From assembly GCF_000150275.1 (NCBI RefSeq), contig NW_002060944.1, positions 189,614 to 253,613 of the forward strand: a stretch of DNA of 64,000 nucleotides. The letters are read 5' to 3'. The notes below the pieces were generated by a model. That model ran no database searches, was not told the DNA's origin, and saw nothing but the letters and a program-made list of their open reading frames with translations. Below are positions 7,293 through 29,670 of this stretch, piece by piece. The stretch comes from Trichoplax adhaerens. Lineage: Eukaryota; Animalia; Placozoa. Position numbers and translations under genes: made by a program. Numbering within the stretch: position 1 is the stretch's first letter; every line of letters starts with the position of its first letter.

Positions 7293-10200
7293 CTATCGGA
7301 GACTTGATTTTCTTGGTATTTGGCTTGATCGTGGAGTTGCTGCCTTGATGCTGGGTTTGCTTCCCGGAGAGCTTAAATCTTGATTTGAAACGGCATTCCC
7401 TTTAAGACTTGGTAGTTCCAGCCCCGGTAAAAAATTTTGTTTTATAGCTTGAGAATCATTTATAGACTCTGATGAGACTAAAAAGGAATATTATACGAAA
7501 ATCATGAATAAAGCGGTTATGTAATCACTTTGATCTAATTATACCGTAGATTTTTACAATTCAAGAAATAACTTTCACATAAAGTCTTAGATCGCTATAT
7601 GTTTATAAAATGCTTGTATAAGCAATGTCTAACATGGTTAAACTCATAACAAGAATAGAAACAATTAGATTTCAAGAATTACTTTAAAAGTTAGATCGAT
7701 ATTACCTTCCAGGTCATTAAAGGATCTTGATTTAGATATAGTTCCAATCGTGAATAAGTCCGAATTTCGATTAGGAGTAGGTTGAAAGATTTCACTTGCA
7801 CCTGCATGCTTTTGTCCATTTCTGGAGTGCTTCTCTAATACTGTAAATGGTCCTGTGGATGAGCTGGTCCTTCTTCTCATCAATCTTTCATTATCGTTCG
7901 TAACATGGCCTTTAGGTATATCCCTAATTGGCTTATACTTCAAGGTCAATCTGCTAAGGAAAAATTATCTGTTAATATATCTATGTCACAATTGAATTGA
8001 AGCTGATTTATTTATCGAAAAGCAGCATATCCTATTAACCCACTTTACATTGCCTAATTCTGTGATATTTTAGTATGTTACTTTAGATTTGTAAAGTACA
8101 CTACTGGGAGATTTATTACCGTACTTTAAATAGCAGCCGGTTATAAGCTTGCTATTAGCAGTAAATTACTCAGGAAGAAAAACCGATTAATTAAGTAGTA
8201 AGAGACTATTTAAGATTCGGCCTTGAGTATTCTTCAAAAATAAAAAAATTGGCTATTACCACTCTTCCGGAATAATCACTGCTTGTATCAGGTAGAGTTG
8301 GAATAGATTTAAATTATAATAGATTAAAAAATCATACTTTTTCCGAGGTCGAACTTCAATTGCACTTTCTAAAATCGATTGATATTCTTCAGATTCTATG
8401 AAGCGCCGGTAACTATTCCTCTCCATGAGGTAATAAATTTTTTTCTGTATATCAATCAATATCCACTTGTTTGGATCATAGAGTGATTTATCAATATTTC
8501 TAATATAGCTAGCATCAATATTAATTTGCTGTGGAGATGATGGAGTTAAATATCGCCTTTGCAATAAAATGTAATAGAATCATCATTATTAATTTAAAGT
8601 GGATTCACTACCAAGCATTCATTTTTTTTATTAAACCTCAAGGAATGTAGCAGCAACTATCTACCAGTACTTAATACGTCAATATAATCATATTAAACAA
8701 ATAAGCCGAAATATGAAGTAACGAACCCGTAAATATCATGAACAACACTAGGCACTAGTGCCATTGGCGTATGGTGTATTAAATTTTCACAATCTAGCCA
8801 GAAGCTGTTTAAGAAAAATGCAGAAAGAGTTAGTTGTTACTTGTTATAGTTTGCCGTATAATATCATTCTTTAAGCCTGCAAAATCATAAAATTTACAGA
8901 GAATATTACATAGCCATTCACAAAGAGTCAAATGAATTCAGACTTGACATTTAAGTTGACATGATGCTTAACTAAACACGATACATCTATGTATAAAATG
9001 TGATGGTTATAACAATAAAAATATTAAGGTTTCAGACCAATACTATCTGAGCGTATCGAGAGGGGTAGCTCCTAGTTACTATAAAAAATCTTATCAAGAA
9101 CACTACAACGATCAACGTTATATCAGAGACCTGTTAAGTTATATATTCTACCTATCAGTTCAATTATTAAAAAGGAAAATTTTATACAGCAAACTCATAG
9201 TCAGTAATTTATTTATAATGACTAATATTATATGTCTTACTTTATATTTTCTTCGCTGTGTTCATTGCTAGCAAATTCAATAAAATTGGTCACTCCAATG
9301 TCATCTCGTAGCAAATCTGCTAATGATACTGCCCATAATAAAACTCGACGTTTATGCAAAACTGTGGCACTATCAATAAATTGTATAGGAAAAAAAATTT
9401 ATTACCTAATGATGATAGCTCATAAATCATGCTAAATTTAGAATGAGGTGTTAACATAATCACTAAAGTGATTTAGTTTACTTGCAGTTATGGATTCGAT
9501 AGCATGTAACAATATCATCAATTTCCTATTTTAATTTTATGTAGGTAAAATACTACAGCATATATTTTATATTAAATTGAATTACTTGACTGAATTTAGG
9601 TTCCATTCTGTAATTTTATCAGTAATCCAAGGATTACTAGTTCTAGTAGTCGGTAGGAATGGATCGTAGTCTTTATATTTTTCACAATTGTTGATAACGC
9701 TATCGATAAAGGGAAATACAAAAAGTTACAATCTAGATCTATTTACTTCAAATGGGAGACATATAATAAATACGCAGACTTATTCGTAAATTGAGATAAT
9801 AATATCTCTTAAGTCCGTATGTAAGGCGTTACTTGGTATCTAATCAGAATTGTGGTATTATGATATATTATATATCTGATTATAATACGACTAGCAGCAT
9901 AGAATCTGTCACTAATTAAGTATAAAATATTTTACATTCTTACTGCATCTCTCGAGCGGTAAGTATAGTCATTAATATAGATAATGCAGGCTGTAATAAG
10001 ATAAACTACTGTAAAAGAAATAATAACACACCATGACTGCTACAATGAATGCTAAAATGAATTACCTAAAGTAATTTTATTATGAGGTAATAAGTAAAAA
10101 AATTGTTTACCTTTCTACACCTTTTGAAACTTTCATAGCACAACCTTCAATCATTTTTCGCAAGGCTTCCGCCTGTTTACAAAATATCAATTATAATTAG

Positions 10201-17145: not shown

Positions 17146-17507
17146 TGTTAAGCTTATTATTATGTAATTTTGTCACATAGCTAGTTTGTGACAATAACGT
17201 ATTACAACTACCATCAATCATTGACAATACATATCAACTATGGCCCAACTATAGACTACAGTACGTGAAATATTCAGAAGTTTGTTAAGTATACCAAATC
17301 ACATTTGCTCTTGCCCTTTACTATCACCACATAACCTGTAACGATTGCCTGGAATATTAGAAAGGCGTTGCTGATCCATGTGTGCCTACTCGTCTATATA
17401 AATAAGCAACATTGCCAGTCTCTGCCCACACTATCATCGTTAACATTAGAGAAGATTCATATAGTACTTCAAAGTTTACCAATAAATCTTAGTTAAGCGA
17501 CAACAAA

Positions 17508-18074
17508 ATGGTTAAATAATACGTAACACTTGTTGGCGTGCCAATCAAAGAATTAGAGAAAGGGAATCATCCACATGTATACATATACCTTAAAGTTGAA
17601 GGATCAGAGTGTTATAAGGCGGCACTTAATGTGAAAGACTATAGTGGCAAAAATATTATGTACGTTTGGAAGGAAGATTTACAGGCTAAATTTTTGAATC
17701 ATTTAAAATCATTGTCTATAGGTGTAGATAATTTCAGCTGTGCTGCAAAGTCTGCCGCTATTGACTATGTTCAAGAAGGATTTATTATTCAAGAGTAATT
17801 TAGCGAAAAAACTGCTGAAGAATTGACACACATTTTAAGTACAACTGTAGATGATATGGTACGCGTATGTGCCCGAAATTCTGAGTCTAAGAATTTTTGT
17901 GTGGGATCAATGTTTAATCAAGGAATACACGATATCTATATGAATCAAGGGGAAAGAAAGTACGAATGCATACGAGGATGTGGCCTTAATTTTCTATGAT
18001 GGCATTGAAGACCAACATAGTGGTGCATTCTTTTCTTTCAAGAAGAATCTTCAGCCTGTGACACTCAAGAATAG
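17508..18074 (+). pseudogene. YukJ/DUF2278-like pseudogene, copy 1 (intronless)
   Basis: MVK*YVTLVGVPIKELEKGNHPHVYIY..YKAALNVKDYSGK..AIDYVQEG..E*F..GSMFNQGIHDIYMNQGE. In-frame TAA at 17517 and 17796 plus a frameshift near 17965. Colinear with the intact copy at 23166. TATA-like tatataaata at about 17396. Confidence 0.9.
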
Positions 18075-19295
18075 CTTGTGGTGATAAATGGGCGATCTCA
18101 ATAACGTTCCCAATTACTACCTCTTAGAGATGAAGCATTTAGAGAAGATTTTCTAGAAATCGATACTTTGCAGAGAAGTATAGTAATAGTTTAAGCAATT
18201 TTAGCTACTCAAACTACTAAATACTGTGTAGGAAGTCGTTATTCCATAGTAAAAAGTTTCAATTAAGTGGTTCCAAAATTGAGTTTGTAACATAAAATTA
18301 ATTAATCAGGCTAGGTGCTATATTCTACAAAAGTCAGTTAATACTCGTTACCAACACCATTGTTTCAAATGGATAAAAGTATTAATTAAAAAGGCACTTT
18401 TAGATAGATAAACCATTGCTAGTGATCATATAACAATGTGTTTTTCAAAAAATTAATTAGAATTTATAAGGTTAGCTTATGAAGAATTTTAGCTTTGCTA
18501 AGTTGCCTTGCTATCACGCTTTGTGATTCAATAAGTTTGATAGCGACGTAATAGTAATTTTTTAGCCATTCCTGACATGGAAAGAAGAAACAGAACCAAT
18601 GCAATCAGAAAACTATAGACACAATAGATAGACCATTAATGATATTGTTGATACAGAAATGATGCATCATTGAAGGTGACGATGGTAATCATTTCGCTAA
18701 GTAAACGATGCAATCGATTAATTCTATGAATTTCGTATAGAATATTTTAAAACTGACGGTCAATATAGCAAAAGGATTCAATAGATTCATATCTCTATAT
18801 GGCTATTTCTTTACGACAGTGTTCGCATAACAATGGAAATATCGATCAATAATTATAGTGACTACTTTCGAATTGGTTATTGAATTTCTACGTTGTTTTC
18901 GAAAAATTAAATCACGAAGATACACCTTTCACTTTTTACTTCAGCGTATATCATGTTTATAGAATTCAAGTCATAACGTAGATATTAAGCTACTCGAAGA
19001 GCATTCAAAAATCATTCATACGATGAAAGAAAAGGGAGTTTTAGATATGACGGCTATAGAATCAAAGCCAAAAGGATATAACTACAAAGAAATTACTTTA
19101 AGTAATGGTATAAGATAGAATAAACGACATGACGATATTGTAACGTAACTTTTTATTATTTTTTAGCTGGGCAACGTCGCGTAGTTATTGCTAATTGATT
19201 AGTAAAAGTATCATCTTGAATTAGATGAATTTTTTTAGCTACTAATAGCCAAATCTGTATTATGGATGACTACCAATAGAAAATTGCTATTCATA

Positions 19296-21264
19296 TTACA
19301 CTTCTAATTCCATCGATTTCCCCATCAATTGTTTCATATTCATAGCAACTGCTTTACAAATAGTTCTTTTATCACCTGTAGTATCAAACGAGGTACGGGA
19401 AAAAAATACAGCTATAGCTAAAGAAACATATGGCATTAATATGCCGACTACAATATTACCGAGTGAAGTAGCCAAATCATGGTAGATTAGAATTATAGTT
19501 ACGGTGTAACCAATTTCAAGAAGTAGCACCAGAAGACAGTTATAAAGCAGTTGTTCTACACCTGGAAGATGTAATAGTTGAGCTGCTGAGTCGTAAATGG
19601 AAAGTCTTATCCATTTCCGGCCGTTCAAACTTTCAACAATGTTGAAATTTGATTGTACATCCTTCCACTCAATTATATTAGCTAATTTACTAATTGTTTT
19701 ATCGGAATTTTTTTCGTTAAATATAAAATAGTGTTTGGACACAGGTTTTGTGGAATGTTTCCTGTTGGAAAAAGTCTTGGATTTGGTGAATAAATTGATT
19801 AGCATCAGGGGAAACTTCGACCAAAATTTGGTTATCGCTTCGATAAGTCTCAATGCATACAGGAATATCTTTTGCATTCAATTCATTAAATAATCCTAGT
19901 ATATATTGCTTTCGATTAAAGTGTCTTTGGATTAAAGCAATCAAAGTAACTACAAAGGGTAATTGAGTTGCAAGGAGAGGCAGCATTCCGCTTGGATGAA
20001 CAACGCCAATAATAATATTAGCCAGAATACTACTGCATAAATTGGTCAATTCGTAACAGAGTAAACCTAAAGACATCGTAAAATAGATTATTAAAAAGTA
20101 ACGATACCATCGACTGGATTTGATGTTAAATTCATTGGCTTTGAAAGTAATCACAAAAATAAATATGTGCAACTGGAACCAATGTACGATTTTGTAAAAG
20201 AATCCTTGATCAACAAAAGTTGCAAACCAATCATTAGATGCTTTGACGTAATTGACACAACCTCGTGCAATCTTGTTTCTTGTTAAAGTGATAGCTACGA
20301 CAGTAACGATCATGCCTAGTAACAGGTTAATGATGAGAAATATGACAAGGCTAGGCAACCAATATAACAAAATCATCAACAAAGTGCTTAGATCTAAATG
20401 TGTATATATGTATCGAAACTTTTGAATATTGAAAATTGAACAGAGAAATGGAATCATGCCACCCAAAAGTAATATGAAATGAAGGAGAAGTATTTGATAG
20501 CACTTCTTTTTCGGAATACAACGATAAATAAATAGTTTTACGGCGTCTGCAGTATCGAATACTTGATATAAACAAATCACTTGCTGGCCTTCGATAGTGG
20601 TCACATCGGTTAAAGTCGACCTTGAAGGAGGTCTGAGAATCAACAGAAATAACTTGAAAACTATTGCTGCAGCAACGATATAAAAAATGATTTCTACATA
20701 AATTAAAGCCAAATCATTTCGTGGTGGGACTACTATAATTTTATCCAACACATTTTTAGAGCATTGCCCTGAGTAAAAAGAACAAGCATAGAATTCTTTT
20801 TTATTATTAATATTTTGTATATTCAAAAGGCGTGCTAGTAAATATTCAGTGACGTTTCGGGTTATATCTGGTGGTTGTAACCTTTCATCTTTAACCGAAC
20901 AATTAAACACTGATGCAATATGTACGGGAGTTTGACCAGCGGTCAATAGATACTGTGGCAAAGCACATAATAGACTAGCGAAATCGTCTGATGTGTGGAA
21001 TAAAAAGTATCCCTCTTCCTTGCATACCATATAATTACGCTAATAATAATAGTAGAACCGAGGTGTGTAATTATTAGCCTTTAAATCGATATTTACCCAA
21101 TAACACGGACGATTTCGTTGTAGCATTTTCCGCACGAGTTCGTCATTTGTGTATGCTAACGTTTTGCTATCTTTGATTTGGCAAAGGGAGTAAGCTTTGA
21201 GTATCTGTGATATGACTAACAAAAGTATTGGGAAAGGCAATGAAATCGATTTAACTGCCTTCAT
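19296..21264 (-). pseudogene. Intronless ~655-aa multipass membrane protein gene of unknown family, broken by one nonsense codon and one +1 frameshift (pseudogene or assembly error)
   Basis: ORF 21264-21040 (signal peptide MKAVKSISLPFPILLLVISQILKAYS) is in frame with ORF 21030-19717 across a TAG at 21042-21040. ORF 19877-19296 takes over near 19717 (..TLFYI to NEKNSDK). The span is 1969 nt = 656 codons + 1. Cys-containing ectodomain followed by about 8-9 hydrophobic segments. Confidence 0.75.
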
Positions 21265-23029
21265 ATTAGTCGCTAATCTTCCAATGTGCAGAGCTATCCA
21301 ACCTTTTTTCCAAGTGATGTAAAATTACTAGCTTAATTAACGTCTAATTGTTTGGTTGACAAATGCTATAGACACTTGAATGATATTCAATGTAATGGAA
21401 TTATTCTTATTTGCCAGCCCTCCCAGACACTTCGCCTTAAAGTGTTATATCTCGATTGTACATTATACTATTCAGTAGAGTGATATACAGTTGTTTGTCA
21501 AAACTTTGTCTATGCCAACTATAAATAACAGGTTCTCGGGTGTGGCAAGCTTGTACGGTACTGCGATAGTTTATGTACAATGCGATCGGTTTTCTTCAAT
21601 ATGTTTGAATAATAAAAACTATAAGTAAAACGCCTCCAAAAGACCAATCGTTATGAACCTTCCTATACACATAGGTCTCTTATTACTGAAAGTTACTGAC
21701 TAATAGTTATAGCGCTAAATTTGCTGCTTAAATATAAAACTTAATTACGGATGTAGAATCTCGAAATCAAGAGCTATCCGTACATATTAAAACCATGCAT
21801 TGGCGATCAATTTTGTACAAATTGATGCAAAAATTGTAATGTCAAATCGATGGAATCATGTCGTAAGCTGTGGACGAGTTGGGTATGGACGTTAAATCAT
21901 GAATTGATAACGCGATAGTAAATTTAGATATGATTTTGTAACTTAATTGGTAAGATATAACTGTATTTGAATGAAAATCATTGTATGACGAATTGCATAT
22001 AAATCGTGAATATTGCTGCAATAATTCAGATAGTCCAGAGATAGTCAAATAGTCCTTGGTAGAGGTTAGACCAACCTAACTTATGTAATAAAGTAAAATT
22101 TACAAGGAACAGTAGTTCTCGATTTATTGTTGAAGATCATTTTAACACAAGTGTATTGTATCCTTATCGTTCCCTTGCCTTTGAAATAACTTTCGCATTT
22201 CCGGCATCCTCCAATATATATCGTACATTATAACCGGAGTACAGACTGGACTAGTCAAGACTAGCTTTGGGTATACTTTGGAGGGAGTACTGTCTACTTT
22301 GGCCTGTTACACCGGTATCGACTATAGTCTAGCCATAAACTACAAGAAAAATTCTATATTTTTGTGATAAAGTATCTTCTCCAAAATGTAACGAGAGCTA
22401 CAGTTTCTTATAAACTTCATTTTATTAACTGTCAATAAGATAAGGTTCGTCTTACCACTGCCAATGACTATCTAACTACAATTAGATAATCTCTGGACTG
22501 TCTAAATTATTACAGCAATATTCACGATTTATATAAAATTAGTTACACTCTGATTTTCCATCAATTACAATCATATCTAAATTGATTATCGCGCTATCAG
22601 TTTATAATTCGCGCTTCTAATTAAAGCATCGCAATAAAAGTCTCCCAGTGCTAACATACTTGGTACAGTCTATTAATTATTATCTCAGATATCTTAATGT
22701 AAACATCTTCCACCTTTAAATACTTAGGCAATCTTACAATCTTGCGTACAATTTATCTGTTTTCATACAATTTTATAATCTTAGCCTTCAGCTTATTTGG
22801 GACTACAATTTTCATGATGGAAGAAATCGTATTTGGTCTTTAAGTGTGCCTTCCTGTATTCATTATCACTGCAATCTACAATAAATGCCGATAATAAAGC
22901 ACTAACATGCAAAGACCACATTATCCAGCATTTTACTATACCGCCCGAGGGGATAGAATTCCATAGCGGATGGAAATCTCCGTGACACCGGAAGTGATTA
23001 TACAGTAAAAAACTGCCAATCCGGTCCCA

Positions 23030-23050
23030 GCTCGTACAGTATATAAGCGT
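23030..23050 (+). promoter_or_regulatory. Putative TATA box of the intact DUF2278 gene
   Basis: gtatataagc about 120 bp before the ATG; equivalent elements precede all four copies (about 17396, 25068, 27487). Confidence 0.5.
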
Positions 23051-23165
23051 TAGATAGAACTGGTTTATCTCATACGGGTCTCTGAAGTATCATTGACGAA
23101 GATTTTCTATCTCAAGGTTTGCCTAGAAATCACTATACTGTATTCGCCATATTAGTGTGTGAGTG

Positions 23166-23786
23166 ATGAATTACTACCGGAAACACGAAACGTCTATAAA
23201 ATATGGTGCGCTTGTTGGAGTGCCGATAAGAGAATTCGAGAAAGGAAATCATCCACATGTGTACATATATGTTAATGTTAGAAAAGGCAACTATAGATCA
23301 TATGTTAGCAAAGAGGATTGCTATAAAGTAGCTGTCAATGTGCAGGACTATAGTGGCAAAAATGTTTTCTTCGCTTATAAGAAAAACTTGCATGCCGCAT
23401 TTTTGCAACGCTTACAATTCTTCTCTGCAGGTGAACATGTTTTGGAGCCTACAGCAAACTCTGGTGCTATTGACTATGTAAGAGGAGGATTTATTAAGAA
23501 AGAAGACTTTCGAGAGGAAACAGAAAGAGTACTATCACAACGTCTTCATGACATTGTATATGGTATGATAGCGGCATGTGAAAAACATCCTGACTCAAAA
23601 ATTTTCTGTTTCGGATCAATGTTTCCTGGTGGAATACACGATATCCATATGAATCAAGGGGAATCACGATACAGGAATAAGCAATATCAAGATGGCGCTT
23701 TAATTTTCTTCGATGCCAATAAAATGCAATATAATGGTGCATTCTTTTACTTTCAAGAAGAATCTTCTGCTTGGTATAGACCGTAA
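23166..23786 (+). CDS. YukJ/DUF2278-family protein, intact, intronless, 206 aa
   Basis: ATG 23166. Motifs YGALVG, HPHVYI, YKVAVNVQD, GAIDYVRGG, FGSMFPGGIHDIHMNQGE and YQDGALIF match the order and content of the DUF2278 (B. subtilis YukJ) signature YGVLKG..PH..AVNV..LDYIR..GIHDIHMNQG..QDG as I recall it. Confidence 0.88.
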   Translation: MNYYRKHETSIKYGALVGVPIREFEKGNHPHVYIYVNVRKGNYRSYVSKEDCYKVAVNVQDYSGKNVFFAYKKNLHAAFLQRLQFFSAGEHVLEPTANSGAIDYVRGGFIKKEDFREETERVLSQRLHDIVYGMIAACEKHPDSKIFCFGSMFPGGIHDIHMNQGESRYRNKQYQDGALIFFDANKMQYNGAFFYFQEESSAWYRP

Positions 23787-25184
23787 CTTGTGCAATTATG
23801 ATGAATGATTTCAGTCCTACTTTTATATAACTATATCTTAGTAACAAAGTATTTGGAAGAGATGCCTTACTGTAGTCGCTAAATTAATACGAATATATCA
23901 AAGTCACAGTTTGATTAACTTTAGCGTTGCGAATAAGCAAACATCGATGTAGAAAATCATTCATCCACAGTGGTAAATATCATGCCAGCTATTCTTGATT
24001 AGTGTCATAAAAATAAGTAATGAAGGTTTCGTATTTAGCATGAATCATTTTACACCCATGACTAACACTATTGTTTTTAATGGATAAAAGAATTAGTTAA
24101 AAATTACTTATGGTAGAATAGTTATCGTTAGAGATCAAATAATAGCCTAATCATGGATTACAGTAGTTGTTATAGTCTTCTCTTCGTGAAATTAAGTATT
24201 TTTAATCCTTAATAGCAGGTTATCTTTTAGGCTTTATAATTTTTTAAAAGGCTTGATTTGTAACAGACAATAAAAACTAACATTGATCACAACATCTGTG
24301 GAATCTATTAGCGCTTGTTATTAAAATAGACGAGATTGTAAACTCAATATGCGGGAAAATAGAGTTTCGTTCGCTTATTTTTATTGAGTATGAAAGCAAA
24401 ATGTTCCGATTGCCCCTAGATTTATAGGTCAAAGAGAATAGTACGATCGTCTTCCAAAATTTTTCTTAACTTAGATCTTTATTTCTATCTTGCTCTTGCT
24501 GGAAAGTAAATTTGTAACAATAATTTATTAGAACAGTGTTAAGGTCTCCGATATAAACAGACTCAGATATTACAATAAAATAAGGTTTGGATAATAGAAG
24601 TTGTCTACATGAATTAGGCTTCATATTTGCTAAGACGATCCTGTTCCGCTTTCACTAAAAGTCAATCAAACAATCTCTTATAATTCTTTAATTATAATTT
24701 AATACCGTATTTACCAAATGTTTATTCCGTATCATATATCATGCAATGGTCTGATGTATACTAGCAGAAACTTTGCTGATAGGAAAGTGTCTGCCATATT
24801 GTTAGCAATGTCGATTAATTGAATTCTGATTATCTTTCCGCTTCGCATCCTTAATTTAAATTGCAGTAAGCATCAATACCAATGGAAAAGGATTAATAGC
24901 TTTAAAATTGGATCAAAAATTATAAATTTTCTCTGGATTGCTTTAACTGAAAATTGTTAATCATTACATTCAGCTTTAACATAAATTAGATTGCTGTATT
25001 TTAATATCACCACAACCTCTAATGATCGCTTGGAATGCTTGTAAAAGCTGCTAATCCAATATCTACTCGTACATAAGCATGAGACATAACTAGTCTATAC
25101 CAATGACATAATTTCATACAAGCTCACTAACTAATATTAGAGAAGATTTTCTATCCCAACGTTTGCCAATAATTCTAGTTAAGG

Positions 25185-25503
25185 GAAAATGAAATGTCTA
25201 TAGTAACATATACATTATAGTGCACATGGAGTAGTTGTCAATGTGCAGGACTATAGCGGCAGAAATATTTTCTTCACTTACAAGGAACATTTGAGGCCAA
25301 TTTTTGCAAGAATTAAAATCTTCTCCGCAGTTAAGCATAAACTGAAGCTTAAAGTAAACACTGACGCTAAAGAAAATGTAAGATGAGAATTTAATAAGAA
25401 AGAAGATTCTGACGGGAAGACAGAAGAAGATATGAGTAAAAAGCAATATAATGGAGCGTTCTTGTACTTTAAACTAGAATCCTCTGCTTGAAATAGACAT
25501 TAA
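25185..25503 (+). pseudogene. YukJ/DUF2278-like pseudogene, copy 3 (internally deleted)
   Basis: VVVNVQDYSGRNIFFTYKEH.., frameshifts, deletion of the GIHDIHMNQG region, then QYNGAFLYFKLESSA*. Flanks match copy 2. Confidence 0.85.
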
Positions 25504-27613
25504 CTTGTGTGGAGATGACGAGTGATTTCAATCCCGTTTATATACCCATCTCTTAGGAAATAAGCATTTGAAGGAGATAGCCTAGTACATAAATTAATAC
25601 GACTGTAGCGAGGGTATAATCTAAGTAACTATAGCATTGCGAAGAAGCAAATATCGAAGTAGAAAAACCATTAAGTGACAGTAGAAAAGTATTATTCTAG
25701 CTATTCTTAATTATTTTCATAATTAGTACCGGTGAGAAAAGTGTCGTATTCACAATAGTCCATTAACACTCGTTACTAACAGTATTGTTTTAATGGATAA
25801 AAGAAAAAGTCTAAAGAGGCATTAGATAGAAAGATCAAAATGGTTGGTGGTCTAATAATTAACAACCTATAGTTCAAAAAATTATTTAGAATTTATAATT
25901 AAGCAAAGTTATTAAGAGTCTTTAGCTTAACTAACTTATACTATGGCTACGTTTTATGATATATTAGATCGCATTGGCTAACTCGCATAAAATTTATGAA
26001 AATCAAATTAAATTTTTATAAGTTCAATTAACAGCTTGCTGGTAAAATAAAGACTCATTTTAGGATTCAGCTTCAGTAATAGTTAGTATTTACGTAATAC
26101 AAACTAAGAACCAGTTATAGCAGAGGTTGTAGATAGTTTTAGGATGGTAGTAATGAGAGTTACGAGAATAACAAGTTTTATTTATGGATTGTAATAGAAT
26201 TTGACTTTTTCAACATAAAATTTAACGTAATCCAAGTATGTAGTAGAAGATATTCGATATCTTATTGATCATGTTAGCAATAAAAAGAATTAGATGATAA
26301 ATATCAACACGAAAGTAGCACTTGTGGTGTCTAGTATTAAGTGTCGTTAATACAGATGAGATTGTAAACATGACATGTCGCAAAAATGAAGTCGGTTCTC
26401 TTACTTTTTATTGAAAGCGAAGCAAAGGCTTCAATTACTCCCAGATTTATAAGTCAAAGAGATTAGTACAGCTTTCCTCCAAGATTTTGTCACTTTTGAC
26501 ATTTATTTCGATGTTGCTCTTGCTATAAAGAGGGTTAGTAACAATTGGGTTATAATAGCAACAGGATGCATAGCTCCATTTAGGAACAAACTATCAGACA
26601 TTGAAATAAATGAGGTTTTAACGTAGAAATTGTATATGTTGAACAGGCGTTATATCTATAAAAGCGATCCTGCAAGGTCACAGGGTGCAACTTGTGAGCG
26701 CTGGCCCTTTCTAATAAAATCTAATGAAATTCCTCCTCCTAATTCTTTAATTACTGTATAATCTACTGTACTATTTATTAAGTGTTTATTCTATATAATA
26801 CTGTATGTGTGCTAATAGAAATTTACCGATAGAAAAATGCCAGCTATGCTGTTAGCGTTATCAATTAATTATATCTACTCGGCAAAAAAGTCGAACAGAA
26901 AGAAATTTCTTTCTGTCTTTATCACTAAGCTTCCAATATAGTACACCAAATAAAACAATAAGTGAGATATTTTAAGTCATTATAACTAGTAAAGTGTCAG
27001 CTGAACCATTTATGGATGTGATTTATATCTAGGGAATAGGCTTAGGTACTTTTCGTAATACTCAAAGGATAAGAAGAAAGATGGCATATTCTAAGAAACT
27101 GTAGATGCGAAGAAGTATACGCCAATGTAGAAAATTATTAATTGATAGTAGAAAAGTATCATACTAACTATTCTTAATTATTGTCGTAAAAACAAGTTAG
27201 CAAAGCGTCGTATTCTACAATAGGCTATTAATCCTTTTTATAATAAAATTGTTTTAATGGATGAAAGGATGAGTCAAAAGTGAGCCTTGCTGTATTTTAC
27301 TATCACTGCAATCCGCAATAAATGCCGATGGTCTACTAATATGATTTGTTAAAGTCAGTAGTATGGCACCAACATACTGCAGACTTCAATGTCAACCACT
27401 ATACTAGGGGATAGATTTCCTTGGCAGATAGAAATCTCTGTCATACTGTAAGTAATTGCAAAGGGCTGATGATCCCGCCCCTACTCATATATAAGCATAC
27501 GATAACATTAGTCTATCCCATACGAGTCCATAAACTTACGTTAAAGAGGATTTTGTATCTCAAGGTTAGCTAAGAAATCGCTATACCGTATTTGAGATAT
27601 TTGTGTGTAAGTG

Positions 27614-28194
27614 ATGAATTCCTTCCGGAAAAATGAAACATCTATAAATTATGGTGTACTCGTGGGAGTGCCAATAAGAGAATTCGAGAGAGGATTTCAT
27701 CCACATGTTTAGATATATCTTAATACTGGAAAAGGCAAGTGCAACCCAAATATTGACAAAGAGGATTGTTATAAAGTAGCCGTCAATGTGCAGGGCTATA
27801 ATAGCAAAAATGTTTTCTTCGCTTATAAGGAAAACTTTCAAGCCTCATTTTTGCAACAATTAAAATACTTCTCGGCAGTTCAATATGAACAGGAGCCTAG
27901 AGCAAACTCTGCTGCTATTGACTATGTAAGGGAGGATTTAAGAAGAAAGCAGACTTTAAAATGAAAACAGAAAAGAACTATCAGACCATCTTCATGGCAT
28001 TGTATATGATATGATAGCCGTATATGAAAAAATTCCTAACTTAAAAAAATTTTTGTATGGGATCACTGTTTGCTGGTGGAATACACGATATCTATTTGAA
28101 TCAAGGAGAATCACGATTTAGGAATAAGTAATATCAAAATGGCACTTTAATTTTCTATGATGCCAGTAAAATGCAATATAATGGTGCGTTCTTC
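27614..28194 (+). pseudogene. YukJ/DUF2278-like pseudogene, copy 4
   Basis: MNSFRKNETSINYGVLVGVPIREFERGFHPHV* (TAG 27710), then CYKVAVNVQGY..AIDYV, several frameshifts, GGIHDIYLNQGESR. The 3' end is deleted and fused directly to block C. Confidence 0.92.
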
Positions 28195-28499
28195 GTAAAT
28201 TTATATCTGATTATCTTCCCTGTTCGCATCCTTAACTTAAATTACAGTAAGCATCATGGAAAAGGATTAATAGCTTTAAAATTGGACTAGAAATTACAAA
28301 TTTTCTCTGAATTGCTTTTACTGAATATTTTTTATCATTACATTTAGCTTTGACATTGATTAGACGAAATCCTATCTTTAATTCTACTGATTTCTTCCGA
28401 ATTATAATATTTAGGGAAAATTAATGATATCTATTTATAAGATTTATTGTAAAATTGGCTTTGGCTACGTACAATTATTAATGAGGCATTACTTTTTCT

Positions 28500-29670
28500 C
28501 TTTCATTGATTTCGAAAATTTTAGCACTTTTAATACATCATTTACTTGCTGTTATATTTTGAGATATTTTTCAAATGCGTATAAAGTATCTCGATATTTT
28601 CCTTGATCTTCGTGAATATTGCCCATACTATTATATGAATTAGCGACATTGAGGTGATCCATTCCAAACAATTTAGAACGAATATTGACACATTTTGGTG
28701 CATTGATATGGCATTTTCCCATTTACGGTGACGATAGTGGACTACGGTAATATTGCTGTATGAAGTAGCAGCCTCTACATACTATTCGCCTAGTCGTGAC
28801 CTGATTACGATAAATGAGTCCGAGAATGCTATGCAAAGATGCGACATCGGTATTATTCGACCCCAGTGACTTTAATAAGTCCTTAAATTTCTTTGGTACA
28901 TAGAAATAGCTTCTGTAATTTTCCGCTGATAATAATATATCAATCCAATATTATAATTTATCTAGTTTAATATTGAGCGACTTTTAATATAGATAAGCCA
29001 TCTTCATATCGAGATCGGTAAGTGTAAATTAATTAATTCTGTATTTCATATCAGTAGGCCACATGTAAGTTTTTGACCCCCAGTATTTAGGATCGAGTAT
29101 ATAATGATTTACGGCCAATTACTTCAGCATTTTCAAATTGACATTGCTTTAGGTAAAGATATCCAATATCCTTATAGGACTTTGCAACATCTAAATTAGC
29201 CTCATGTTACGATTTCCAAATTTTGTAACAAGTACTAGATCTGCACTCAGCAAGGAGACCCAGTAATTAAGTTGAAGAACTAACTTTATTGTTAAAATGA
29301 AGAGTTTATATACTTTCTTTATTGTGACCTTTGATCTACTAACGTAGATCACAAGATCATCACTAACAGAAAGGTTTCCCTAGTTTAGTCATTACAAATA
29401 GACTATCATGCCAAGTATGGCAACATGAGAATACATATATAGATAAGCTTAATATAGTACCATAACTACATCTATATACGCATGACGTGATAATAACATC
29501 GTGATATTTAACCATATATAGAAAGAAGGTAACATACTAATTATGTAACTATTACAGAACGTGGCACCTCAACAAAGATGGCTTGTTGAATCTTTAAAGC
29601 TTTAATCTACGTTTGTAAAGAATCCTCATATTTGCACTGATGGCAATAAACTAGGCCAATATCATTATTT
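28500..29670 (-). pseudogene. Decayed tetratricopeptide-repeat gene (kinesin-light-chain/NPHP3-type 42-aa TPRs)
   Basis: Fragments with stops and frameshifts: NDIGLVYCHQCKYEDSLQT*IKALKIQ (~29670-29585), NLDVAKSYKDIGYLYLKQCQFENA (~29195-29125), NIGLIYYYQRKITEAISMYQ, LGSNNTDVASLHSILGLIYRNQ, LFGMDHLNVANSYNSMGNIHEDQGKY (~28675-28595). Confidence 0.75.

Follow-up and report, generated by a model that had tools for sequence, protein, structure and literature searches.

A transcribed DUF2278/YukJ gene of probable bacterial origin and its three pseudogene paralogs in the genome of Trichoplax adhaerens

The 64,000-nucleotide stretch of Trichoplax adhaerens DNA considered here (contig C1413:189614-253613, below referred to as the window, whose own numbering is used for all positions of the locus) carries an array of four gene copies of the DUF2278/YukJ family (PF10042; Bacillus subtilis YukJ), designated c1, c2, c3, and c4 in the order of their position, in a part of the window with a GC content of 0.29-0.35. 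One of the copies, c2, is intact and transcribed, and the other three are pseudogenes. Comparison with large protein and genome collections gives good support to a transfer of DUF2278 from bacteria to the placozoan, as had been proposed from inspection of the DNA alone (the sequence-only reading).

When the intact open reading frame (ORF) was compared with the window by tblastn, four intronless copies were obtained, all on the forward strand, in agreement with the earlier description of four same-strand intronless paralogs, one of them intact with the full GIHDIHMNQG..QDG signature. This signature is found in c2, and its second His is changed to Tyr in c1 and c4. The assignment to the DUF2278 family was verified with the PF10042 profile, which c2 matches with 100.2 bits (cut-off 25) and E 1.9e-28 over profile positions 5-198/206, and a genome-wide Pfam family search returned the same c2 match; two ORF pieces of c1 (E 2.4e-9 and 5.8e-5) and the pieces of c4 are recognized by this profile as well. 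The c1 copy is devoid of a nine-codon insertion common to c2 and c4, c3 has lost codons 1-55 and carries an internal deletion and a stop, and c4 has lost the end of the coding sequence (CDS) together with most of the 3' untranslated region (UTR). A protein query search of the whole 105.6-Mb genome (1414 contigs) found no further copies. Two borderline Pfam matches on another contig, C1396:882559-882783 and 897155-897370 (L004 and L005), were rejected, as neither tblastn nor DNA comparison relates them to the array; these near-identical tandem-repeat loci, with units of about 200 bp and 89% identity, are tandem-repeat artefacts. The absence of an evident signal peptide, remarked on in the sequence-only reading, was likewise seen when the c2 N-terminus, MNYYRKHETSIKYG, was read directly: it contains no hydrophobic stretch. 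The features of the locus are collected in Table 1.

Table 1. Features of the DUF2278 array and of its surroundings, in positions of the window (aa, amino acid; nt, nucleotide).
Feature	Position	Strand	Remarks
RGS-domain exon	8256-8564	-	host exon
TATATAA upstream of c1	17395-17401	+	position homologous to the c2 TATA box (three-way upstream alignment, pattern search)
c1 pseudogene	17520-18058	+	46% aa and 70% nt identity to c2; tblastn match 17520-18056; in-frame stops; broken, scrambled C-terminus; H161Y
c1 3' UTR remnant	18279-18392	+	71% identity to 23995-24103 (blastn)
TRIADDRAFT_52867	19296-21030	-	multi-pass membrane protein; 496-aa model; overlapping ORFs of 437 and 193 aa
437-aa ORF of TRIADDRAFT_52867	19717-21030	-	100% identical
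Inverted repeat	21953-22150 / 22362-22578		arms of about 200 bp, 73% identical; the c2 unit begins about 500 bp further downstream
c2 upstream (promoter) region	22842-23039	+	common to c4, c1, and c3
TATA box (TATATAA) of the live gene c2	23040-23046	+	126 bp before the start codon, 29-33 nt before the transcript start
c2 transcribed unit	23075-24268	+	unspliced mRNA of about 1.2 kb: 5' UTR 23075-23165, CDS 23166-23786, 3' UTR to about 24256-24268
c2 intact CDS	23166-23786	+	206 aa; ORF 23163-23786, ATG at 23166; DUF2278/YukJ domain; all invariant residues kept
c3 truncated pseudogene	25142-25815	+	5' UTR remnant 25142-25175, codons ~56-127 and 184-203, then 3' UTR remnant
c3 coding match	25231-25488	+	tblastn
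c3-unit distal 3'-flank remnant	26347-26545	+	72% identity to 24321-24521 (blastn)
Isolated 3' UTR-like remnant	27106-27279	+	71% identity to 23928-24102 (blastn); abuts the start of the c4 unit
c4 pseudogene unit	27278-28364	+	upstream region with TATATAA at 27488-27494; coding remnant 27614-28194; resumed 3' similarity
c4 coding match	27611-28194	+	tblastn; 57-60% aa identity; at least 5 stops; frameshift near 27930-27980; H161Y, D176N
c4 resumed 3' similarity	28198-28364	+	corresponds to 24817-24990
TPR exon	28552-28722	-	host exon

The relationship of the copies extends well beyond the coding sequence, and the shared non-coding flanks described previously were confirmed by blastn between the units. 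Thus, c2 and c4 are 80% identical over 800 bp of DNA, 215 bp of which lie upstream, and the c2 3' UTR resembles the DNA downstream of c3 and c1 with 71-74% identity. The sequence TATATAA precedes c1, c2, and c4 at aligned positions, while at the matching place of c3, about 60 bp upstream of its 5' UTR remnant, only a degraded CATAAG is present; the claim of a TATA-like element before each copy holds for three of them and for the fourth in decayed form. Such a motif is not rare in an AT-rich window (80 occurrences were found versus 109 expected), so the evidence lies in positional homology and the mapped transcript start rather than in the motif itself. As all four copies share a homologous TATA-bearing upstream region, the duplications took place after the eukaryotic promoter had been gained. 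The c2 promoter also contains two 5-bp insertions of the form (T)ACAG(T) next to TA, at about 23001-23006 and 23034-23039, which have no counterpart in c1, c3, and c4, and one of which directly abuts the TATA box. As to base composition, the c2 CDS (GC 0.37; 0.30 at third codon positions) is host-like, as had been pointed out; however, its bacterial relatives have a GC content of 0.35-0.36 and are as AT-rich as Trichoplax, so composition decides nothing on ancestry, and its use as evidence of amelioration was rejected.

The live gene was present in 20 public runs from 7 studies. In runs of 27-213 million letters 80-87% of its 31-mers were recovered, and about 80% in several runs of 27-80 million; this indicates transcription, since genomic DNA at less than twofold coverage of 106 Mb could not give 80%. 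RNA contigs of four runs from four studies were then mapped on 22400-28399, a segment which takes in c2, c3, and c4, and in every run they were confined to an interval starting at 23075, 23079, or 23108 and ending at 24206, 24256, or 24268. Judged from contig starts at 23075 and 23079, the transcript begins about 30 nt downstream of the TATA box; library adapters adjoin positions 23079 and 24256 in run X7. In none of the four runs did the contigs show joints indicating splicing. The 5' UTR of about 90 nt contains no upstream ATG, and the 3' UTR comprises about 480 nt. Contig depth was zero over 22800-22999 and over 24400-28399, which includes c3 and c4, though contigs alone cannot prove that the pseudogenes are silent. 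Thus c2, for which an expression check had been suggested, is expressed from its own TATA promoter and other eukaryotic signals, and several independent studies show it to be strongly expressed. The inverted repeat that precedes the c2 unit is matched by RNA contigs at 22507-22643, with 90-95% identity only and with continuation into unlike sequence, and this element is probably a dispersed repeat transcribed elsewhere.

The array is surrounded by host genes, as the sequence-only reading had maintained in placing it on an animal chromosome. TRIADDRAFT_52867, transcribed in the opposite direction, separates c1 from c2, and exons of RGS-domain and TPR genes flank the array on both sides; TRIADDRAFT_52867 has no Pfam domain and no homolog beyond its own Trichoplax-only cluster. 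The record of the intact gene lists a contig of up to 9.74 Mb. In the independently assembled Trichoplax sp. H2 the same genes are found: TrispH2_004185 corresponds to c1 and TrispH2_004187 to c2 plus c4, RDD43976.1 belongs to the same 90% cluster as the intact DUF2278 protein, and RDD43974.1 is the c1 counterpart. The 393-aa H2 model RDD43976.1 (TrispH2_004187, P0118) joins the intact copy to pieces of a c4-type pseudogene, one of them used twice, and is likely an annotation artefact; in the H2 model for c1 (P0137) the region with the HDIHMNQG motif is spliced out. The explanation of the array as bacterial contamination or an assembly artefact, in favour of which the known presence of symbiont DNA in the original Trichoplax project (PMC3641634) could be cited, retains practically negligible probability in view of this integration between host genes on a contig recorded at up to 9.7 Mb, of the presence of the array in the H2 assembly, of pseudogene paralogs sharing eukaryotic promoter and UTR DNA, and of an mRNA with its own TATA promoter and long UTRs. 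The argument against contamination made from degenerate paralogs is thereby upheld.

In a collection of 5.8 billion proteins, the best-matching relatives outside the placozoans are 40-46% identical, about 185 aa long, and originate from an Akkermansiaceae metagenome-assembled genome (MAG), gammaproteobacterial MAGs, and thioautotrophic gill symbionts of Bathymodiolus; an exhaustive HMMER scan of 1.84 billion representatives added a few more metagenomic proteins. When one genome was scanned for each of 185,579 species of bacteria and archaea, relatives were found to be encoded by at least 488 stretches, and among the matches listed only that of the B. azoricus symbiont is close (42%), all others being at most 34% identical. 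In the JGI metagenomes no more than two close relatives were detected, each of them symbiont-like, and the sister subclade of the Trichoplax copies was not found there.

For phylogenetic analysis the two frames of c4 were joined by XXX and stops were written as X, with no real letters at the breaks. In a tree of 117 rows c1, c2, and c4 group together (SH-aLRT 96) inside a short-form clade of 14 rows on a long stem. In a tree of 34 rows the three copies are monophyletic (97/98) and are united with P0121, P0248, P0120, and P0251 (98/94), while the whole short clade, which comprises 18 rows of marine proteins of about 185 aa and whose other half is all bacterial, is supported by 100/100. This clade is rare, and its named members, all of them bacterial, are thioautotrophic symbionts of Bathymodiolus azoricus, thermophilus, and septemdierum, uncultured Gammaproteobacteria, and Akkermansiaceae MAGs. 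The Trichoplax copies are therefore nested in a bacterial clade, as expected from the bacterial ancestry proposed earlier, with four metagenomic proteins that carry no taxon name as nearest sisters; for this reason no donor can be given, and passage through an intermediate host is possible.

Such an indirect route, in which a giant virus or another eukaryote that had taken the gene from bacteria passed it on to Trichoplax, appears unlikely. It would fit the absence of the nearest sisters from species-representative bacterial and archaeal genomes and from the JGI metagenomes, and a giant-virus contig (L166) does encode a DUF2278-like protein; however, the latter is just 26% identical to that of Trichoplax and matches only the C-terminal third of the Pfam profile, and all named members of the clade are bacterial. 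The viral ORF in question (L166:5848-6414 (+), 188 aa, from the MAG IMGVR GVMAG-M-3300007072-7; Pfam E 1e-12 on the C-terminal third) is located amid patatin-like phospholipase, ResIII helicase, and TFIIB-like genes. Much less probable still is that DUF2278 is old and vertically inherited in eukaryotes and was lost by other animals. Nothing found speaks for this beyond the thin sampling in databases of non-Trichoplax placozoan genera and many protists, and against it stand an intronless gene nested deep in a bacterial radiation behind a long stem and three large protein searches with no other eukaryotic match.

Within the animal the copies have a recoverable history. Nei-Gojobori estimates of synonymous divergence (dS) are 0.38 for c2-c4 and 0.68 for c2-c1, with ratios of nonsynonymous to synonymous divergence of 0.57 and 0.50, respectively. 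The lack of the nine-codon insertion marks c1 as the oldest branch, and the presence of both c1 and c2/c4 in H2 places the duplications before the H1/H2 split. The copies differ in what they have kept: out of 36 columns conserved in at least 85% of 141 relatives, 30 are retained in c2, 17 in c1, and 21 in c4, and the eight residues invariant in 142 sequences (D103, G150, G156, H158, H161, N163, D176, and G177) are all present in c2, while c1 and c4 share H161Y, c4 also has D176N, and c1 is without the D176-G177 region. Mainly on this contrast in conserved residues, c2 appears to have been under purifying selection. With one live copy and three dead ones, the birth-and-death evolution that had been suggested for the array was recovered.

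In bacteria DUF2278 is very often fused to a lamin-tail domain (LTD), and fusions to Endonuclease_NS (P0122), to a calcineurin-like phosphoesterase (Metallophos; P0160), and to a KAP NTPase (P0202) were observed. The NTPase part of P0202 matches PDC-S20, PifA, and QatA in PADLOC weakly, and the matches of phospholipase D (PLD)-like neighbours are weak too. In 12 of 160 loci (L007, L010, L012, L021, L032, L050, L053, L082, L108, L124, L148, and L151) DUF2278 adjoins a co-directional gene for a two-HKD PLD-like, nuclease-type protein of about 550-640 aa. Eight of these loci belong to named genomes spanning Pseudomonadota, Nitrospirota, Bacteroidota, and Bacillota, and four are metagenome contigs; the two genes occur in variable order, mostly 10-50 bp apart (218 bp in L082, where the lamin-tail domain is carried by the PLD protein rather than by DUF2278). 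Judged from gene neighbourhood, this pair looks like an undescribed two-gene module, and the bacterial context as a whole points to phosphodiester chemistry. A dihydropteroate-synthase neighbour, which forms the largest cluster, was not accepted as a functional link, since it is restricted to Acidobacteriaceae (nine named genomes) and unlabelled metagenome contigs and is convergent in orientation, which is indicative of lineage synteny. The short-clade proteins are standalone, and in SUP05-type symbionts they are encoded downstream of uvrD in the same orientation. A marine metagenome contig (L087:795-3394 (+)) contains a short-clade DUF2278 gene and, behind it on the same strand, a 153-aa ORF and genes for a eukaryote-type Ser/Thr kinase and a Sel1-repeat protein, a gene set typical of host-associated bacteria.

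A PDB sequence search with the c2 protein gave no match at E up to 10, and no solved DUF2278 structure was found. The protein was modelled with AlphaFold from 142 aligned relatives with high confidence (pLDDT 90.6, pTM 0.89). The best 50 VIA-align matches of this model were all oligonucleotide/oligosaccharide-binding (OB) folds with Z from 7.2 to 4.8, headed by baculovirus LEF-3 (Z 7.2 over 101 residues, root mean square deviation 3.1) and including bacterial and mitochondrial single-stranded DNA-binding proteins (SSBs), PriB, the RecG wedge, MCM N-terminal domains, and B subunits of AB5 toxins; an earlier, weaker model gave the same list. Provisionally, the core of c2 is thus predicted to be an OB-like barrel. 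In the model strands 3 and 4 are separated by an insertion of about 85 residues that includes a long helix and D103; H158, H161, and N163 occupy the loop that immediately follows strand 4, D176 begins strand 5, and the nearly invariant H31 and N58 lie on strands 2 and 3, respectively. Judged from OB topology, these residues may form a site for a metal or another ligand on the face that OB folds usually use for binding. The two functional claims of the sequence-only reading fared differently: the conserved His and Asp residues it had pointed to are indeed invariant (H158, H161, D103, and D176), and a metal- or ligand-binding site would agree with the OB topology of the model, whereas its designation of the protein as an enzyme is not favoured by a predicted barrel of a kind that mostly binds and seldom catalyses.

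According to these data the best explanation of the array, to which a probability of about 0.8 can be assigned, is horizontal transfer from a marine bacterium, directly or through an intermediate, followed by the gain of eukaryotic signals, local duplication, and the survival of one copy. A small standalone DUF2278 gene would have entered the placozoan germ line and acquired a TATA promoter and eukaryotic UTRs; at least three local duplications, with dS of 0.38-0.68 between the copies, would have followed before the H1/H2 split, and all copies would then have decayed except that at 23166-23786, whose unspliced mRNA is expected to yield a 206-aa cytosolic protein. As regards function, it can tentatively be proposed from the model and the bacterial associations that this protein is a metal- or ligand-binding OB-like module which engages nucleic acid or another phosphodiester-containing ligand. 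In bacteria the module would work with nucleases and phosphodiesterases, whereas the Trichoplax protein would have no such partner and might have foreign or ingested nucleic acid as its target. A defensive or digestive role of c2 may be envisaged. A more specific version, in which c2 is an abundant cytosolic sensor or effector directed against foreign (bacterial, viral, or ingested) nucleic acid and is under diversifying selection, is doubtful, although diversifying selection would explain both the purely nonsynonymous variation described below and the birth-and-death array.

Several observations weigh against this account of origin and function. With respect to ancestry, the nearest sisters P0120, P0121, P0248, and P0251 are metagenome or Logan proteins and give no donor name, and the lack of other eukaryotes among the matches, seen in 5.8 billion and 1.84 billion proteins with a profile search agreeing, concerns collections whose coverage of other placozoan genera is not known. 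With respect to function, no experiment defining an activity for any DUF2278 member was found in the literature and database search; PADLOC, which has no DUF2278 model, gave no match for the Trichoplax protein or the bacterial DUF2278 domains; the fusion and operon context belongs to long-form subfamilies and not to the short clade of Trichoplax; and a single query of the Trichoplax genome for a bacterial-type PLD partner gave no match, which is not proof of its absence. NCBIfam likewise returned no match for the Trichoplax protein. With respect to the fold, the Z-scores stay below 8, so that homology to OB folds is not proven, and Foldseek, a check proposed together with a structure model from the outset, failed to match the confident model at E < 0.1; over all comparisons, against PDB (with both models) and BFVD, nothing was obtained at E < 0.07, and ESM Atlas gave no usable match either. 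With respect to constraint, all six coding variants of the RNA contigs (K26E, P95S, T96R, Y132H, H141N, and F149V) are nonsynonymous.

Three of these six variants match the H2 protein, and K26E falls on a position that is nearly invariant in the short clade. The excess of nonsynonymous changes is not significant (P 0.26) and reaches P 0.046 only versus synonymous and UTR sites pooled, and positive selection was therefore rejected as a conclusion; the recent variation of c2 gives a hint of relaxed or diversifying selection. A further possibility is that c2 is a functionless, still transcribed relic not yet disabled in a dying array, which three dead copies out of four and the lack of any synonymous variant favour. 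It is nevertheless improbable, because c2 has preserved a frame of 206 codons in DNA of 33% GC and all eight invariant residues, while c4 and c1 gained stops, and because its strong expression recurs in independent studies. The main alternative use of the predicted barrel, as a metal chaperone or buffer similar to CusF and SilF or as a glycan binder similar to AB5 B subunits, seems less probable than the engagement of nucleic acid or a related ligand, without being negligible. The H-x2-H-M-N motif, in which two invariant His residues are accompanied by a Met that is nearly invariant (99%), would suit such a role, and the structural matches include SilF as well as pertussis, Shiga, and typhoid toxin B subunits. 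These score no better than the OB folds that bind single-stranded DNA, however, and neither metal transporters nor glycan enzymes occur among the bacterial fusion and operon partners of DUF2278, which are nucleases, phosphoesterases, and an NTPase.

In comparison with known DUF2278/YukJ proteins, that of Trichoplax has the same full-length domain with the G-x-H-D-I-H-M-N-Q-G loop and the D-G pair. It differs from the mainstream family in belonging to a short (~185 aa) marine subclade only 25-34% identical to it, in a nine-residue insertion after residue 40, and in being encoded by a nuclear gene with a TATA promoter and long UTRs and with no LTD, nuclease, or NTPase partner. The short proteins of Bathymodiolus SUP05-type symbionts and Akkermansiaceae are alike in size, standalone, encoded by AT-rich DNA, and 40-46% identical over the full length; yet they form a sister subclade and are not the nearest relatives, and the symbiont gene follows uvrD, whereas that of Trichoplax is monocistronic. 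The predicted core of the model superposes on the OB-fold single-stranded nucleic-acid binders SSB, PriB, and LEF-3 over 80-100 residues (Z 5-7), but the sequence identity to these is 5-19%, and the model differs by the insertion of about 85 residues and by the invariant His/Asn/Asp loop, which is missing from SSBs.

Other bacterial genes, among them dapF, murA, GNATs, and photolyases, were reported in Trichoplax in Driscoll et al. study (2013, PMC3641634). Like the DUF2278 copies these are intronless, of bacterial type, and located on large eukaryotic scaffolds, some in tandem; unlike them, they came from a screen for Rickettsiales-like genes, while the kin of the Trichoplax DUF2278 gene are gammaproteobacterial and verrucomicrobial and three of its four copies are dead. 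DUF2278 is not among the 12 transferred genes listed there (PMC3641634). In the literature search DUF2278 was met in an Enterococcus locus and YukJ as a protein of "unknown function", with no link of either to placozoans found, and the Trichoplax gene is annotated only as a hypothetical protein. The transfer of DUF2278 into Trichoplax is thus apparently previously unreported, although the kind of event is familiar in this genome.

In summary, DUF2278 is a clean addition to the small set of bacterial genes that were integrated, expressed, and kept by an early-branching animal, and the array displays all stages of this process side by side, as a live gene together with three fossils of different ages. 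For the widespread bacterial DUF2278/YukJ family two handles are provided, namely the predicted OB-like model with its His/Asn/Asp loop and the recurrent link to nucleases and phosphodiesterases, and strong standalone expression in a eukaryote suggests that the domain activity may be self-sufficient. If the role in sensing or acting on foreign nucleic acid were true, an animal immune or digestive factor would have been derived from an uncharacterised protein family.

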